Assembly: GCA_019828565.1 (NCBI GenBank)
Contig: JAHDYR010000012.1
Location: forward strand, 1,178,001 to 1,242,000
From: Carpediemonas membranifera BICM
Lineage: Eukaryota; Protista; Fornicata
Length of the DNA stretch: 64,000 bases
Direction of reading: 5' to 3'
A model generated the notes under the pieces. The model was not told where the DNA came from. It did not search any database and worked only from the letters and a program-made list of their open reading frames with translations. This document shows, in pieces, positions 62 through 47,255 of the stretch (its first letter is position 1; each line of letters starts with the position of its first letter). Both the position numbers and the translations under genes were made by a program.

Positions 62-1639
62 ATGCCCGATGAGCTAACGCTGCTTCTAGTTGGCAGTGGA
101 CATGCAAACCTATCATTACTAGCTGTTTTAGCACGGCGTGGACAGGCGAATATTCGTGTTACTGTCGTGTCGCCGTCGCGAACAACATACTTGACGCCGC
201 GGCAAGCATATTGCCTTGCAGACGCTGTTAACCCGAAGAAGGAAGAAAAGAAGACAACTGTTAGTGTTGTGGACTTCTGCCGCTGGTCTGGGGCCCGCTA
301 CATCGAGAGCGAGGTGTCGTCCATCAGCGCATCTTCCAACAAGTCGGTCGCCGTCCTGGCTAACGGCGACGAGGTCCCCTTCGACTATGCGTGCGTGGCC
401 GTGGGGTCGACTTCGCTTGGCCCCGTGTCGCTGCAAAAGCCCCAGCCCGGCGCGCCATCCCTTGCTGTGCCGCTGAGGCCGTACCCGGAGTTCCACAAGG
501 CATTCTCGAAATTCTATGATTCTGTCAAATCTGGAACGATCCGGCTCCGTGGGACCCAGCCCAAGGAGGGCGGCAAGGTGTTCCGGGTGGTGGTCGTCGG
601 GGATGGGCCCCAGGCGGTGGAGACCGCACTTGCTCTCAGGGTGAGGGGCAGGCAGCTTGAGATGGCCCACACAGACACAAAGGTGACCATCAAACTCGTC
701 GGCAGCGAGAGACTCCCGTTCAAGGGCCGTGCAGTTTATGACCGTTTGGACAAGGAGCTAGTTCGGGCAGAAATCCAGTACATCCCGGGGCTGCCCATCG
801 AGAGCGTCACCCATGCGTCTGCCTTCACCCCTGCGAGTGTGAAGATGCAGGACGAATCGATGCTATCCTTTGACCTCGGCGTCATGTGCCTCCCCTCAAC
901 AAGAGCGGACTTGCCCAACTTCGGGCTGCCGGCCGACCCGGAGACAAACAGGTTTACCGTCGAGTCAACCCTGCAGGTGACTGGCATGCCCAACGTCTTC
1001 GCCCTTGGCAGCTGTGCGCTGATGCCCGGCAAGGAACCGCACCCCACGTGGACACACGGGTCGGACATCTCCCTGTCCCAGGGCACACACGTAGCGGGGG
1101 CCATCCTTAAGCTGGCCGCCCGACCCACAGCCAAGGTACCCAAGTTCAAACCCCCCCGCCGCAGCCTGGCCATCATGTCGTTCCTGAGGAAGAGGCCCCG
1201 AGTCATCCTCCCGAGGGGCGGGCCGGACGTGAAGCTGGCCAAGGGCGTGGCGTCCCGCAAGGCGTGGGCTGACCGAGACCGGACCGAGACCCGCCTGTTC
1301 GAGTCGTTCGACATCTACTGCCTCGCCAAGCCCCTCAACCGCCTGGCTTCCTGGGACTACTCGGAGGCCGCCCTGTCCCGCCCAGCGCCCGGTGTGGCAT
1401 CCCCGCCGCCCCGGACCCCGATGTCGCCCGTCCTCGGCGTCCGCTCCCCACCCCCGTCGTCATCGTACAGGCGGCCGTCAGGGGGGTCAGGGCCGGGCCT
1501 CACCGTGCCCCCACCCCCGCCCAGGGGCCCACCCAGCTTGAGGTCGCCCCCGCCGCCGATGTCTGCGTCGTCGCCTTCCATTGGGGCGAGGAAGCTACCA
1601 CCCCCAGCACCGAGCAGGCCACCGCCGATGCTGCGGTGA
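62..1639 (+). CDS. FAD-dependent pyridine nucleotide-disulfide oxidoreductase (NDH-2 / SelD-N-terminal-like) with proline-rich C-terminal tail
   Basis: N-terminal LLLVGSGHA dinucleotide-binding motif, FDYACVAVGS, second VVVVGDG motif, TLQVTGMPNVFALG; poly-Pro tail. First ATG is at 62. Confidence 0.75.
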   Translation: MPDELTLLLVGSGHANLSLLAVLARRGQANIRVTVVSPSRTTYLTPRQAYCLADAVNPKKEEKKTTVSVVDFCRWSGARYIESEVSSISASSNKSVAVLANGDEVPFDYACVAVGSTSLGPVSLQKPQPGAPSLAVPLRPYPEFHKAFSKFYDSVKSGTIRLRGTQPKEGGKVFRVVVVGDGPQAVETALALRVRGRQLEMAHTDTKVTIKLVGSERLPFKGRAVYDRLDKELVRAEIQYIPGLPIESVTHASAFTPASVKMQDESMLSFDLGVMCLPSTRADLPNFGLPADPETNRFTVESTLQVTGMPNVFALGSCALMPGKEPHPTWTHGSDISLSQGTHVAGAILKLAARPTAKVPKFKPPRRSLAIMSFLRKRPRVILPRGGPDVKLAKGVASRKAWADRDRTETRLFESFDIYCLAKPLNRLASWDYSEAALSRPAPGVASPPPRTPMSPVLGVRSPPPSSSYRRPSGGSGPGLTVPPPPPRGPPSLRSPPPPMSASSPSIGARKLPPPAPSRPPPMLR

Positions 1640-1710: not shown

Positions 1711-3073
1711 ATGCGCTCAAAAACTACCGAAAAGTTGATGGCCGTGGATAAGAGTCGTGAATACAGAGCTCTCATCGATCAGGAGAACAGCAAAATAGCA
1801 GCAAAGAGGGTCGGAAAGCCGTTAGCTAGTGCTAGAAGCACGAGCAAGAGCCCGTTCGTTGTGATTGCGAGAAAACGGCCGATTCTCGCTGGCGATAGCA
1901 CCTTGTTACGTCCTGAGGATGTTATCAATAGCATCTACAGCTGTAGTCCCACCACCTATGTCCATCGATGCCAGGACAACGTCGACACGACCACCGCGAT
2001 CAAGACGACGGCCTTCAAGACCAGCTTCTCCGCCGACGAAGCCACCACCACCGCCCAGCTCTACGACACGCACGTCCGCCCTATCGTCTCCAACGTTGCT
2101 GCTGGCAAGCTGAGGCAGGGCACGATCTTTGCCTACGGCCAGACCGGATCCGGGGTACGCCCTCCTTCCCACGCTCACACAGAAGGTTTGCTGACTCATA
2201 TCATTGCTCACACAGACATTCACTATCTCAGGCATCCTGGGTGCTGCAGTCGCTGACATGTTCCGCCACTCGAGCTCCGTCACGGTCAGTGCGATTGAGA
2301 TGCTCGGCAAGACCATCACAGACGTACACACCGGCGCTCCCGTCTCGATCTGTGAGGTAGGCCGGCATGTAGAGATCCGCGGGGTCTCAGCGGCAATCTG
2401 CCCCACTGAGGCCGACCTGGCCCATCGCGTTGTCCGGGCATCGGAGCTGAGGGCCACGGCGTCCACTGCCCGCAACAGCACGTCGTCCCGGTCACACCTG
2501 GTCTACTCCTTCATGTTCGAGAGCGGGGCTCAGCTCCGGGTGCTGGACCTGGCGGGCAGCGAGAGCACGTGCGACCAGCTCGAGCACGACAAGGACCGCG
2601 TCAAGCAGGCTGCCAGCATCAACACCTCCCTCATGGCACTCAAGGAGTGTCTTCGCCGAGTGGCGGAGGGCAGCGGCTTCGTCCCGTTCCGCCAGGACCC
2701 GTTGACCCTGCTGCTCAAGCCATGCCTCGACAGGACCAAGGGCAAGCTGCCGCCCGTGCCCGACACCGCCGTCATCGTCACGGTCTCGCCGCTGCAGCGG
2801 GACTGCCGACAGTCGGTCGCCTCGCTGCGGTACGGGGCCCTGTTGTGCTCGGCCGCGGACCACAAGGACGAGGGCCTGATGGCGTGGGGTAAGGAGCAGA
2901 CGGCTATGTGGGTCGAGACGACGCTCGGGTTCTGCCCCGATCCTGTACGGAACCTACCGGCGAAGCGGCTGTTCACTATGACTGTCGAGCAGCTTAAGCG
3001 GTTGATTGGAAAGGACCAGGCGGGACAGGCGCTGTACGATGAGATTTACAAGCTCAAGCGGGCCAGGCGGTAG
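1711..3073 (+). CDS. Kinesin motor (kinesin-13-like) with C-terminal SAM/PNT-like domain; exons 1711-2154, 2183-2185, 2216-3073
   Basis: ARKRPI, IFAYGQTGSG-K-TFT P-loop after splicing, NSTSSRSH switch I, LDLAGSE switch II, INTSLMALKEC, VPFR. Introns 2155-2182 and 2186-2215. Confidence 0.88.
2183..2185 (+). other. 3-nt microexon (AAG, Lys) of the kinesin P-loop
   Basis: Flanked by gtacgc...gctcacacag (28 nt) and gtttgc...gctcacacag (30 nt); including it restores GQTGSGKT. Confidence 0.85.
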
Positions 3074-15571: not shown

Positions 15572-17262
15572 TTACACCTGGCTCTCTCGCCTGCTCTTGG
15601 CCGGCGATGACACTATAGAGGCGTCACACAGCGTGTCGTCGCCTACGACGGGGTACAACGACGCGGCCGAAATGGGGTTGCTCGTCATCTTGCCCGACTC
15701 GATGAGCTCTTCCTGACCGTGGACCTCCCTCGCGATGTACTCCTTCCGCCGCTCGGTCTCGCTCTTGTCCCTTGTCAGCAGGGGCCGAAGGACGTTGGCG
15801 TCAAGGTAGTGCATGGCTCCGTGCACTTTAGACCGCGTGGCGACGACATCCTTCTTGGCCTCCTCGATCTGCACGTTAGTGGGGATCCGGAGCAGCTTCA
15901 GCATGGGCAGTGTGCCTGTTCCAGTGCACAGGACGGTCACTACGGCGAGGATGAGCGTCGTAGTCATAAACATCGAGCTGTGCGCTGATGTCTCAGTCAT
16001 CTAAGTAAGCTATAATATAAATGTAATGTAACACACGTAAAGGACTAGGCCGAAGCACACGGCTCCCCTGAGGCCACTGTACCAGATCATCATGAAATGC
16101 TTTGCGGGGATTAGCTTCTTCCTGGACCGCGACCTGATCAGCCTGATGAGGTTCGCCAGGCTGAGCAGCGGCACAACGTTGAACAGCCTCGCGATGGGCG
16201 CGCTGATGAGGGTGAGCAGCACGAAGAGCCAGTTGAAGTCGTGCTGCACGGAGCCCTCCGCCTTGCCGCTGATGGCCGCGCCCAGGAAGAGGAATATCGC
16301 GGTCTCGCTCACCCTGGAGAGCAGTTCAATGGTGACGTGAGCGGCTTCCCGACCGTCGCTCGACATGTTCCGGCGGGTGTACTGAGCGCATATGATGCCG
16401 GTGAACAGGACGCTCATCACGCCGCTGCAATGAACGATCTCCGCGGTGACGTACGACAGTATGGCGAAGCACAGCAGCGTGCCGACCTCCGTCCAGGGCC
16501 GTGACATGAACATCGGCGTCACTCGGAAGTACAGGGTGGCGAGGAGACCGACGACCAGGCCGAGAGTGATCGAGACCACCGTCTTCCAGCAGAATGACCA
16601 CATGATCTCGATGACGGTGAACCATCGTAGTGAATCGGCGTTGATGCCGTTTAGGGCGTTGAACAGCACGACGACGACGGCATCGTTCAGTACTGACTCG
16701 CCGACTGTGTTAGCAGGGATGGGTGTGACGCACAGATGAGGTTATGCAGGTCCGGATCCACCTTGAGACTGTTGAAGATGGCCAGCGTGGCAACGGGGTC
16801 GATGGCGCTGATGACAGTACAGAACGTCAGCGTCTCGAAGAAGGAGACAGACTCGGTGCCTGGGATTGGGATGAAGTGGTATGGGACGTAGATGAGCAGG
16901 ACGGTCACAGCGATGTTGATGACGGTGCCAACGATGGCGAGGCTGAAAATGGTGACGATATTCCGGAAAAAGAAAGCCTTCTGAAGGCAGTACCCCCCCT
17001 CAAACACAATTATAGGCAAAAGATAGAGGAAGAAGCTCTCGGCGTCGAAGGACAGGATGTCGAAATGCTGATTGATGTCGAGGAAGGTCACCCGTGTCAG
17101 GAGACCAATAGCAGCTCCAATGACGATGATCACAGCCGTTTCGGGGATAATAGACAACTTGTAATGGTGGATAACTTGCTGTGCTGCGATGAGACCAATG
17201 ATTATGACCGCTAGAAAGAACAGCGGCAGGGGATGCGTGTTGATGATGCTCTCAGACGACAT
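15572..17262 (-). CDS. Na+/H+ exchanger (CPA1/NHE); introns 16705-16733 and 16001-16036
   Basis: FFLYLLPIIVFEGGY, ISAIDPVATL, LI|FGESVLND restored by splicing, WYSGLRGAV, MFMTTTL. Confidence 0.93.
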
Positions 17263-33595: not shown

Positions 33596-35475
33596 CTACC
33601 TTTCGACCGTGTTACACGAGTGGCACTCGGGGCACTCGTAGCCGATGAAGTGCAGAGGCGCCTCCCACTTGTGGCTGCACTCGTTGCATATAACCTTGCG
33701 TGTGTGAGACTGGTACTCCACCGGTGTCGGCTGGGAGGCGATCTGGCGGCGACACCAGTCATTGTAGCTGTCCTTAGCCCCACCCGTGAGCATGAGCTTG
33801 TTGCACAGGGGGCACGTGTACATGTGGCTGTTAATCATCTGCTGGTAGCACGATAAGTGGAGCATATGCCCGCACGGAAGGGGCAGGGCGGCCTCTCTGC
33901 CGTGCTGCAGGTCCCCCTGACACACGCCGCAGCTGCTGTTGCCCCGCAGCGACGCGTTGTTGCATCTGTGGTGCGGGAACATGTCCTGCTGGAAACACAT
34001 CCCGCACGCGTCACAGTGGATCGACTGGTCGGGGCTCCCGATGCGGCAGATCGTGCACTTGTCGCAGTGCGTGATGGGCTTCTGGGGGTGGCTCTCCCAC
34101 AGGTGGCACTCATCGCAGTAGTAGCTGCCGAACACGAGGCCACACCCCACGCACTCCTGCGAGGGACCCTGCACGAGGCCGCACTTCATGCAGCGGACGG
34201 CCTCGATCGCCTTCCTGTCGAGCGTGTGCTCATGCTCCTCGTCATGGCAGAGCCGGCAGGCGTAGAACTGCTTGCACTTGGGGCACTGGACCATGCAGCC
34301 CCGGATGTAGTGGGGGCACCCGTACACCCGCTCTACCCGTCCCACCTTCATCTGCCGGAAGAGCTGGATCGAGTAGTGGTTGAGCAGCTCGCGGTTGAAC
34401 TCTGTCGGGTGTTCCAGCTCGTGGTCGACGATCGCCGCCCAGTCGGTCATGCCCCGGGCCTCGTAGAACCTCTTACGAATGCGGTACGTCAGCCCGCGAT
34501 GTCCCGTCTCGAGGGTGGGCCGGTCTGGCTTGATGTCGCGATGGAGGGTCATCTCCGTTATCTCATGCGGTGCAGCCTCGGTGGGGCCGCCGAAGTACTC
34601 GTCTGGCAGGGCACGAACCTCGTCCTCGAAGATGGCGGCGACCTCCTCGCTGAGTTCTGTTTTGATGTACTTCTTGACGCGGTTGATGAGAGCTTCGCGA
34701 TCAGATAGGTCGAGGATGGCGACGTTGACGAAGGAGTCCGTCGCCACGACCTTCTGGGCCTGCACTTGGGGCGTGTGGTGTTCGTTCATCATCTCGAAGA
34801 TGAGCTTGGACTTATCTTGCGGCGTCATGTGATCGTCGGACTGAACCTCCTTGATCCGCTGCCGCAGTGACGTCGAGCGCTCCTCCAGAACCTTCCTGTT
34901 GGTGACTACCGACGCGTCTGCCCGCATTGCCTGGACCTGCCGCAGGAGCTGCCGCACCAGGGGCATACGGGCCGACGTCGTCAGTTCGGGGTCACGGAAG
35001 ATCTCAGCGACACGGGTGGTGATCTCCAGGGACGATATGGAGGGCTGGATCGTCACCATGTGGCGCAGAGCTGAGATCACCGGCTGCATTCGGGGGGGCT
35101 CCTCGTCCGAGTCCGGGGGCTCGGCAGCCTCATCGTCGGAAGCCACATCGGGGGCGACTGCCTCTTCTTCTTCGGGCTCGCTACCAGCCGCAGCCTCGGC
35201 CTCCCCTGTCTCCTCTTCGGGCTGACCGCGTGCGGCAGTAGCCCGCGATTGGAGCGCGTTGAGGAAATGGTGGTACGTGAGGCCCTGGAGGTTCTGAATG
35301 ATGCGCTCTAGATGGCTTTCTACGATGTCGGAGAGGCCTTGCCACCGGGGATCATCGCTGTGTGATGAATGTCAGGGGAAACGCACTTATCGATCTCAGA
35401 GAGGCGCTGCGTCGATATATCGGTTAGAATAGTCTCTGCCTCCTCAAGAATGGTTGCAAGAGACGGGATATCCAT
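33596..35475 (-). CDS. RCHY1: CHY zinc finger / RING E3 ligase (Pirh2/RCHY1-like); intron 35358-35386
   Basis: YGCPHYIRGC...CRLCHD, RING CGVC...LPCGHMLH...CPLC, C-terminal CNEC...CPECHS. ATG at 35475 joins through a 29-nt intron. Confidence 0.88.
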
Positions 35476-46534: not shown

Positions 46535-47255
46535 CTACACACCCACCTCGTAGCTCATCTGAACCGCGCCCAGCTTCCTGCGGCGACCGACACTGGCGCC
46601 CTTCAGGACCCGGATGCTCATCGCCGGGCTGGCAGTTTCACTGCGCGCCACCTCATTCACGGATGACGCCAGTGACGGGAGGTCGTCTGCGGAGCTCGGT
46701 TCGGTACGGGCCAGGCGGGGCTGGTCGGCAGGCTCAAGGTTGGCCGAGCGGGCCAGGAGCTCCTCGTTGGTGGGCTCTGATGGCGGCGTGGGGATGTTGG
46801 TTGGCGGAGAAACCATTTCGGGCTCGGGCTCGGGGGTGGGCGCGTCGTTCGCCACGGCCTGCTCGAGCTCGGCCTTGTAGGTCATCGCGGACCCCGTCGC
46901 ATAGCGGCTCTGGATGGTAGCCAGGCCGAGTGGGACACCGCCGTTCTTGAGGTGAGTCGTCAGACGGCGGTGGCCGCCGTGTTGCATGAAGAGGATCTCG
47001 CTCGGGGTCCAGAAATCGAGAGTAATGGACTTCACAAAGGAAATATGGACGCCAAGACCTCTGTGAATGCCCGCACAAGAGTCACAGATGAAGATACCAA
47101 ATGTTCTTGACGCAAAGAGCGGATTCGCCGATCCACACTCGAAGCATGCGTTCTGTGTGAGATAAACAGCTACAAACGAGCATACAAACCTTGTTCTTCC
47201 TTCTAAGCTCCAAAAGCTGCTGCCTAGCGTCAGTTCCTCTGTCAACTCCTCCCAT
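46535..47255 (-). CDS. ArfGAP; intron 47153-47189
   Basis: MGGVDR...RKNK|[11 protein letters not shown]...[22 protein letters not shown]. Confidence 0.92.

Follow-up and report, generated by a model that had tools for sequence, protein, structure and literature searches.

A one-codon exon between two minimal introns probably supplies the P-loop lysine of a kinesin-13-like gene in Carpediemonas membranifera

The gene considered here lies in a 64,000-nucleotide stretch of contig JAHDYR010000012.1 of C. membranifera (hereafter, the window). It codes for a kinesin motor whose two large exons part company in the middle of the P-loop (Table 1). The tail of exon 1 reads GGC CAG ACC GGA TCC GGG (2137-2154) and is followed by a 28-nt intron, a solitary AAG codon, a 30-nt intron and the ACA TTC ACT start of the last exon; the sequence matches exactly the layout described in an earlier note on this DNA. 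The start of exon 1 at ATG 1711 is our own choice, and the public model, in which the gene is fused to its upstream neighbour, enters the exon at 1735. The two introns share the 3' end GCTCACACAG, and each has its own 5' site, GTACGC in intron 1 and GTTTGC in intron 2. A recent tandem duplication was considered as the source of both introns but seems unlikely, as the two sequences, set side by side, are dissimilar beyond the splice signals and GCTCACACAG.

Table 1. Features of the kinesin locus, other introns of the window and loci used for comparison. Positions given without a locus or contig name are those of the window; ^ marks an intron position.
Feature	Position	Strand	Description
Upstream kinesin exon (exon 1)	1711..2154	+	Open frame, 148 codons, ends ...FAYGQTGSG
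Intron 1	2155..2182	+	28 nt, GTACGC...CTCACACAG, GT..AG, phase 0 after the third P-loop Gly codon
Putative fused branch-point and 3' splice-site motif, intron 1	2174..2182	+	CTCACACAG
3-nt exon AAG	2183..2185	+	Walker A (P-loop) Lys; K655 in KAG9395194.1
Intron 2	2186..2215	+	30 nt, GTTTGC...CTCACACAG, GT..AG, phase 0, separating the Lys codon from the Thr codon
Putative fused branch-point and 3' splice-site motif, intron 2	2207..2215	+	CTCACACAG
Last kinesin exon (exon 3)	2216..3073	+	Begins ACA TTC ACT (TFTISG); 285 codons and stop TAG 3071-3073
Fusion intron of KAG9395194.1	1439-1470	+	32 nt, GTCCGC...GTACAG, off consensus
Fusion intron of KAG9395194.1	1636-1734	+	99 nt, GTGAAC...AAAAG, off consensus
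Further consensus intron in the window	16705-16733	-	29 nt
Further consensus intron in the window	35358-35386	-	29 nt
Further consensus intron in the window	47153-47189	-	37 nt; interrupts ArfGAP zinc-finger-like gene (...N^ACFECGS...)
P-loop intron after Thr (GQT^G)	L038 882-925		Blattamonas kinesin-13
P-loop intron, phase 2 in Ser codon	L036 1162-1243		Kipferlia ortholog of the window gene, GIQ81967.1
P-loop intron, phase 1 in third Gly codon	L041 637-664		28 nt; Skoliomonas litria TZLM1-RC kinesin-13; also in 23 C. membranifera paralogs
P-loop intron after Gly	2155..2182		Window intron 1
P-loop intron after Lys	L037 2903-2991; window intron 2		Kipferlia kinesin-13 and window gene, same position and phase
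ATG-only exons	G000:C9:205985-206057, C9:250571-250643, C54:686027-686099		
ATG-only exons	G000:C26:725193-725274, C26:744257-744338, C26:773363-773444		

As in every search of this work, the two large exons were used one by one, here against the Pfam Kinesin profile PF00225 (gathering cut-off 29.3 bits). Exon 1 matched profile positions 23-87 (E 2.8e-08, 33.6 bits), and exon 3 matched positions 122-322 (E 4.1e-29, 102 bits). The RKRP motif is found in exon 1, while SSRSH (switch I), DLAGSE (switch II) and KEC are located in exon 3. The P-loop motif GxxxxGK[ST] becomes complete solely when the AAG exon is included. The closest relative of the gene product is P0001, a protein of 399 aa which shares 47% identity with it in a full-length alignment including the C-terminal tail. 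P0001 is encoded in a related, Carpediemonas-like assembly, GCA_002919055.1, which we infer to be probably a metagenomic bin of C. frisia. Its gene is an uninterrupted reading frame lacking any intron at the P-loop and reads GQTNSGKT. In the alignment with P0001, exon 1 covers residues 1-108 and exon 3 takes up again at residue 110 and runs to 391, so that K109 alone has no match. As the 536-aa neighbour of the P0001 gene is unrelated to the upstream ORF of the window, synteny with the related bin lends no support for orthology.

The named relatives of the window kinesin are of the KIF2/24 type, and the KEC motif is present. At the KVD position the window kinesin has DNVD and P0001 has KMKVD. 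The canonical kinesin-13 of C. membranifera is a different gene (product P0121). Judging by these sequence features, the window gene appears to code for a divergent kinesin-13-like motor.

To enumerate the possible splicing outcomes, every GT/GC..AG intron of 18-150 nt within positions 2110-2290 was considered, either singly or in pairs. This gave 228 frame-preserving solutions with one or two introns. GxxxxGKT (as GQTGSGKT) was restored solely by removing 2155-2182 together with 2186-2215, and this pair was also the sole solution of the 228 with the genome consensus at both ends of both introns. The best single-intron solution, 2155-2215, begins at the start of intron 1 and ends where intron 2 ends. 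Such a 61-nt intron takes the AAG codon with it, deleting nothing but the Lys; the frame is kept (433 open codons), and the product reads GQTGSG-TFT. Retention of intron 2 brings in an in-frame TGA at 2192-2194, and retention of intron 1 likewise results in a premature stop. Both consequences foreseen in the earlier note, namely that splicing of the two introns yields GQTGSGKT and that skipping of the exon preserves the frame, hold when all 228 solutions are compared.

P0241, a protein of 940 aa that came up when proteins were searched exhaustively with exon 3, is 100% identical to this exon over residues 656-940. Its GenBank entry is KAG9395194.1, "Kinesin motor domain [Carpediemonas membranifera]", and its sequence is assembled from window positions 62-1438, 1471-1635, 1735-2154, 2183-2185 and 2216-3073. 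The 3-nt exon is therefore already included in the public gene model, which reads FAYGQTGSGKTFTISG (GQTGSGKT) and has the Lys as residue 655. This runs against the expectation that gene predictors would likely call one 61-nt intron here. The C. membranifera annotation made use of RNA-seq intron hints (HISAT2, GeneMark-ET, Augustus) and PASA transcript alignments (PMC8516963). As a predicted model built with RNA-seq hints, KAG9395194.1 may be taken as indirect support for the inclusion of Lys. Because it also contains a doubtful fusion to the upstream gene, the model calls for some caution at this locus.

This fusion deserves a comment of its own. KAG9395194.1 joins an upstream flavoprotein-like gene to the kinesin by means of two introns that are off the genome consensus (Table 1), and the second of them removes both the upstream stop and the kinesin ATG at 1711. 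Since the ortholog P0001 stands alone, the fusion is probably an annotation merge. The public model would then probably have the micro-exon right, yet two genes merged.

The intron class of C. membranifera was derived from genome-wide pattern counts, with the reversed pattern serving as the control. GTNNGT-N10-40-TNACACAG gave 1132 matches versus 316 in the control. When the spacer was narrowed to N14-16, corresponding to introns of 28-30 nt, there were 393 matches versus 17, so introns of this length hold nearly half of the total excess. The 25-27 nt range (86 matches versus 22 in the control) is without excess, because about 60 of the 86 matches belong to a single dispersed repeat. In C. membranifera, 28 nt is both the modal intron length and its sharp lower limit. 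The repeat in question is a 25-nt string, GTGGGTCCTACCCAAAGTTACACAG, present in about 60 copies on many contigs (e.g., C1:24942-24966 and C1:30734-30758). Its copies typically come in same-strand pairs with a spacing of about 5.8 kb, resembling the two ends of a dispersed LTR-type element, and they inflate naive counts of short introns.

The +6C variant of the 5' site, GTNNGC, constitutes a genuine minority class, with 94 matches at 28-30 nt versus 35 in the control. Both kinesin introns in the window carry C at position +6 and thus belong to this minority type, which, measured by excess counts, accounts for about 13% of introns in the 28-30-nt class. By signals and length, introns 1 and 2 fit the 28-30-nt class of the genome. 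Three further consensus introns were located elsewhere in the window (Table 1).

In the introns of Giardia, Trichomonas and Carpediemonas the branch point abuts the 3' splice site (PMC1201135). The CTCACACAG motif agrees with such a fused design, and by analogy it may include the branch point here as well. The metamonad introns described in that work are short, of the GT..AG type, and hold a ACTAACACACAG-type motif with the branch point in their last 9-12 nt; the CTCACACAG ends of the window introns resemble it. Two Carpediemonas introns and no micro-exons were known at that time, while the 28-nt floor and the abundance of 28-30-nt introns come from the counts made in this work.

A six-frame Pfam scan of the genome has shown many kinesin genes to be split at profile positions 85-87. 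At least 23 C. membranifera kinesin genes have a P-loop intron located 2 nt upstream of the intron 1 position. We fetched 23 such junctions (loci L010-L029 and L031-L033, e.g., G000:C54:1423742-1423765 and C17:191287-191310), and in 23 out of 23 a GT..AG intron (one of them ending in AT) had to be removed to restore GxxxxGK[T/S]. In all 23 the intron is in phase 1 within the third P-loop Gly codon, G^gt...ag^GN AAG AC. Its length is exactly 28 nt in 15 of the 23, and introns of 66 and 74 nt also exist. All of these introns start with GTNNGT and end with NTNACNCAG or a near variant. The public protein of the canonical kinesin-13, P0121, reads CFAYGQTGAGKTFTMM, that is, it is spliced exactly as deduced from the sequence. 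Like P0241, P0121 matches DNA of this genome with 100% identity and is listed in GenBank under C. membranifera.

Some of the individual loci have peculiarities of their own. The 28-nt P-loop intron of L025 (G000:C2:406670-406850, minus strand) ends in ...CTTACACAT, with AT instead of AG, and the frame together with GKTYTME is restored solely with this AT boundary. This may be either a base error or a non-canonical 3' site whose choice depends on how far it lies from the branch point. L016 (G000:C31:69410-69610) and L017 (C21:179950-180190) are near-identical kinesin paralogs with P-loop introns of 37 and 74 nt, respectively. The difference is a 37-nt insertion with the direct repeat CACCGTT on its flanks, which illustrates how an intron can grow via a small insertion or duplication. 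In the Kipferlia bialata ortholog (L036, BDIP01000547.1), short peptide stretches of the annotated protein each match the gene at two or three sites, spaced about 110 nt from one another, suggesting tandemly repeated exon-intron units or assembly artefacts.

Among metamonad kinesins, five distinct intron positions were found within 12 nt of P-loop codons (Table 1). The P-loop intron was absent from both genes checked in the related bin (L001 and L034). This would fit a recent parallel gain of the intron in the 23 paralogs, but the Skoliomonas litria kinesin-13 has a 28-nt intron in the same position and phase. Since that gene shares the intron, it is at least as likely that an old position was lost in the bin. 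A literature search for conservation of intron positions in the P-loop of kinesins found no paper.

In the paralogs and in the Skoliomonas litria kinesin-13, the P-loop intron is mostly 28 nt long, has the same signals and lies no more than 2 nt from window intron 1. However, those kinesins have one P-loop intron, whereas the window gene has two, separated by 3 nt, and window intron 1 is in phase 0 while the P-loop introns of the paralogs and of Skoliomonas litria are in phase 1. The micro-exon is best read as two near P-loop intron positions present side by side in one gene, which may have arisen through sliding or through separate gains.

Several counts bear on whether such a layout could arise by coincidence. 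CTCACACAG occurs five times in the window versus 0.76 expected, and five or more occurrences were seen in none of 100 shuffles. The composite pattern CTCACACAG-NNN-GTNNG-N10-40-CTCACACAG has seven matches in the 24.2-Mb genome versus none for the reversed control. These counts exclude a chance origin of the micro-exon layout. Two full sets of splice signals stand 3 nt apart, and each of the introns is at or near the minimal length.

We consider it highly probable (roughly 85%) that the P-loop Lys codon forms an exon of its own, 3 nt long and constitutively included, with a minimal spliceosomal intron on either side (28 and 30 nt). The earlier note had proposed a one-codon exon between two minimal introns as the source of the Walker A Lys, and this proposal is strengthened by the intron consensus and by the one-residue gap in the ortholog alignment, as well as by the intact switch I and switch II motifs and the GQTGSGKT of KAG9395194.1. 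The two introns would probably be excised in succession, whichever goes first. Just 3 nt separate the 3' site of intron 1 from the 5' site of intron 2 (AAG^GTTTGC), which shares sequence with the exon context of that 3' site; because of this overlap two spliceosomes could hardly be accommodated side by side. Either order of removal would lead to ...GSG-K-TFT... and an ATPase-competent P-loop. The proximal 3' site would presumably be favoured over the distal one for two reasons: once intron 1 has been transcribed completely, another 33 nt have to follow before the 3' end of intron 2 exists, and a length of 28 nt is both the mode and the minimum for introns of this genome.

The AAG codon could alternatively be a regulated cassette exon, with AAG-containing and AAG-skipped mRNAs both present in meaningful amounts and a Lys-less motor that is nucleotide-binding-dead or rigor-like. 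The Walker A Lys contacts nucleotide phosphates in P-loop NTPases, so the AAG-skipped product should be catalytically dead. Skipping is feasible in that it leaves the 433-codon frame open, a 61-nt intron falls within the observed size range (compare the kinesin P-loop introns of 66 and 74 nt), and both 5' sites are of the weaker +6C type. However, the internal CTCACACAG provides a 3' signal of full strength at the modal distance of 28 nt, and the sharp peak of intron lengths at 28-30 nt speaks for splicing to the proximal site. In the related bin and in Kipferlia, the orthologs carry the P-loop Lys codon without a micro-exon and therefore cannot skip it, and the public model includes K. Nothing was found in the sequence that would call for regulation of the AAG exon, and we regard such regulation as unlikely.

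Somewhat less probable still is that the mature mRNA normally lacks AAG, with one 61-nt intron removed and a degenerate, Lys-less pseudo-motor produced. GT at 2155 and AG at 2215 do delimit a legal frame-preserving intron, and the protein is divergent for a kinesin-13. This explanation makes CTCACACAG-AAG-GTTTGC a coincidence, yet the composite pattern has no control matches genome-wide; moreover, SSRSH, DLAGSE, RKRP and KEC are all intact, two orthologs retain GQTNSGKT, and K is included in KAG9395194.1. A decaying or untranscribed gene copy with intron-like signals as relics is the least credible of all, given two large exons that are fully open, the complete set of intact ATPase motifs, perfect signals in both introns and an alignment with P0001 that extends over the full length, C-terminal tail included, at 47% identity.

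The probable one-codon exon in the kinesin has counterparts elsewhere in the genome. The pattern TNACNCAG-N1-12-GTNNG-N12-30-TNACNCAG gave 58 matches genome-wide versus 4 in the control, including an array on contig 4 (C4:1716xx-1720xx), and most unique loci matching it have 3-nt exons. Micro-exons are a class in C. membranifera. Others noted in this genome share the intron signals and the 3-nt spacing with the kinesin AAG exon, but build cysteine-rich N-terminal or repeat modules, whereas the kinesin AAG isolates one catalytic residue. In a multi-copy family that is also among the matches, ATG is a 3-nt exon between consensus introns (Table 1), apparently the lone start codon after a 5'-UTR intron. 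Two more pattern matches fit even smaller candidate exons between consensus introns: a 1-nt exon (G) at G000:C16:90929-90969 and a 2-nt exon (AC) at C6:627854-627891.

No paper describing micro-exons in Carpediemonas was found in the literature. Exons of 3 nt and even 1 nt have been documented in animals, plants and fungi (PMC6314551, PMC8831610, PMC8042270, PMC12940212). Plant micro-exons range from 1 to 15 nt (PMC8831610), and Fusarium CYP621A has a 1-nt exon (PMC12940212). Like the AAG exon, the constitutive micro-exons of plants and fungi are tiny coding exons needed to recover a conserved residue or to keep a conserved domain in frame; they are similarly hard for aligners and annotators and are detected by homology and splice signals. 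Their flanking introns, however, are of ordinary size and have separate branch-point and polypyrimidine signals, whereas the AAG exon is flanked by introns of 28 and 30 nt with a fused branch-point/3' motif, the whole unit taking up 61 nt. The 3-nt micro-exon of mammalian cytohesin-1 gives rise to diglycine and triglycine isoforms (PMC6314551). Both this exon and the kinesin one are 3 nt long and add one residue in a ligand-binding pocket, and in cytohesin-1 the presence or absence of the exon alters ligand binding. Nevertheless, the cytohesin-1 exon is a documented regulated alternative with both isoforms functional, whereas the skipped kinesin product would be left without its catalytic residue, and alternative use of the AAG exon is hypothetical.

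If regulated skipping did prove true, one-codon splicing would toggle a kinesin between an active ATPase and a microtubule-binding, non-turnover Lys-less form, and a protist whose intron repertoire is minimal would be switching a motor on and off at the level of splicing. Unless this is the case, no major view is changed. The locus is also a reminder that gene models at such sites deserve checking. As a constitutive exon, the AAG codon offers a clear example of a single gene that combines two near intron positions which as a rule exclude each other. It would show how far exon size can shrink, with the catalytic residue of an ancient ATPase fold placed on a 3-nt exon. Given the 28-nt floor, the fused branch point and 3' site and the 61-nt unit, the spliceosome would have to act twice here within a space below its own footprint.
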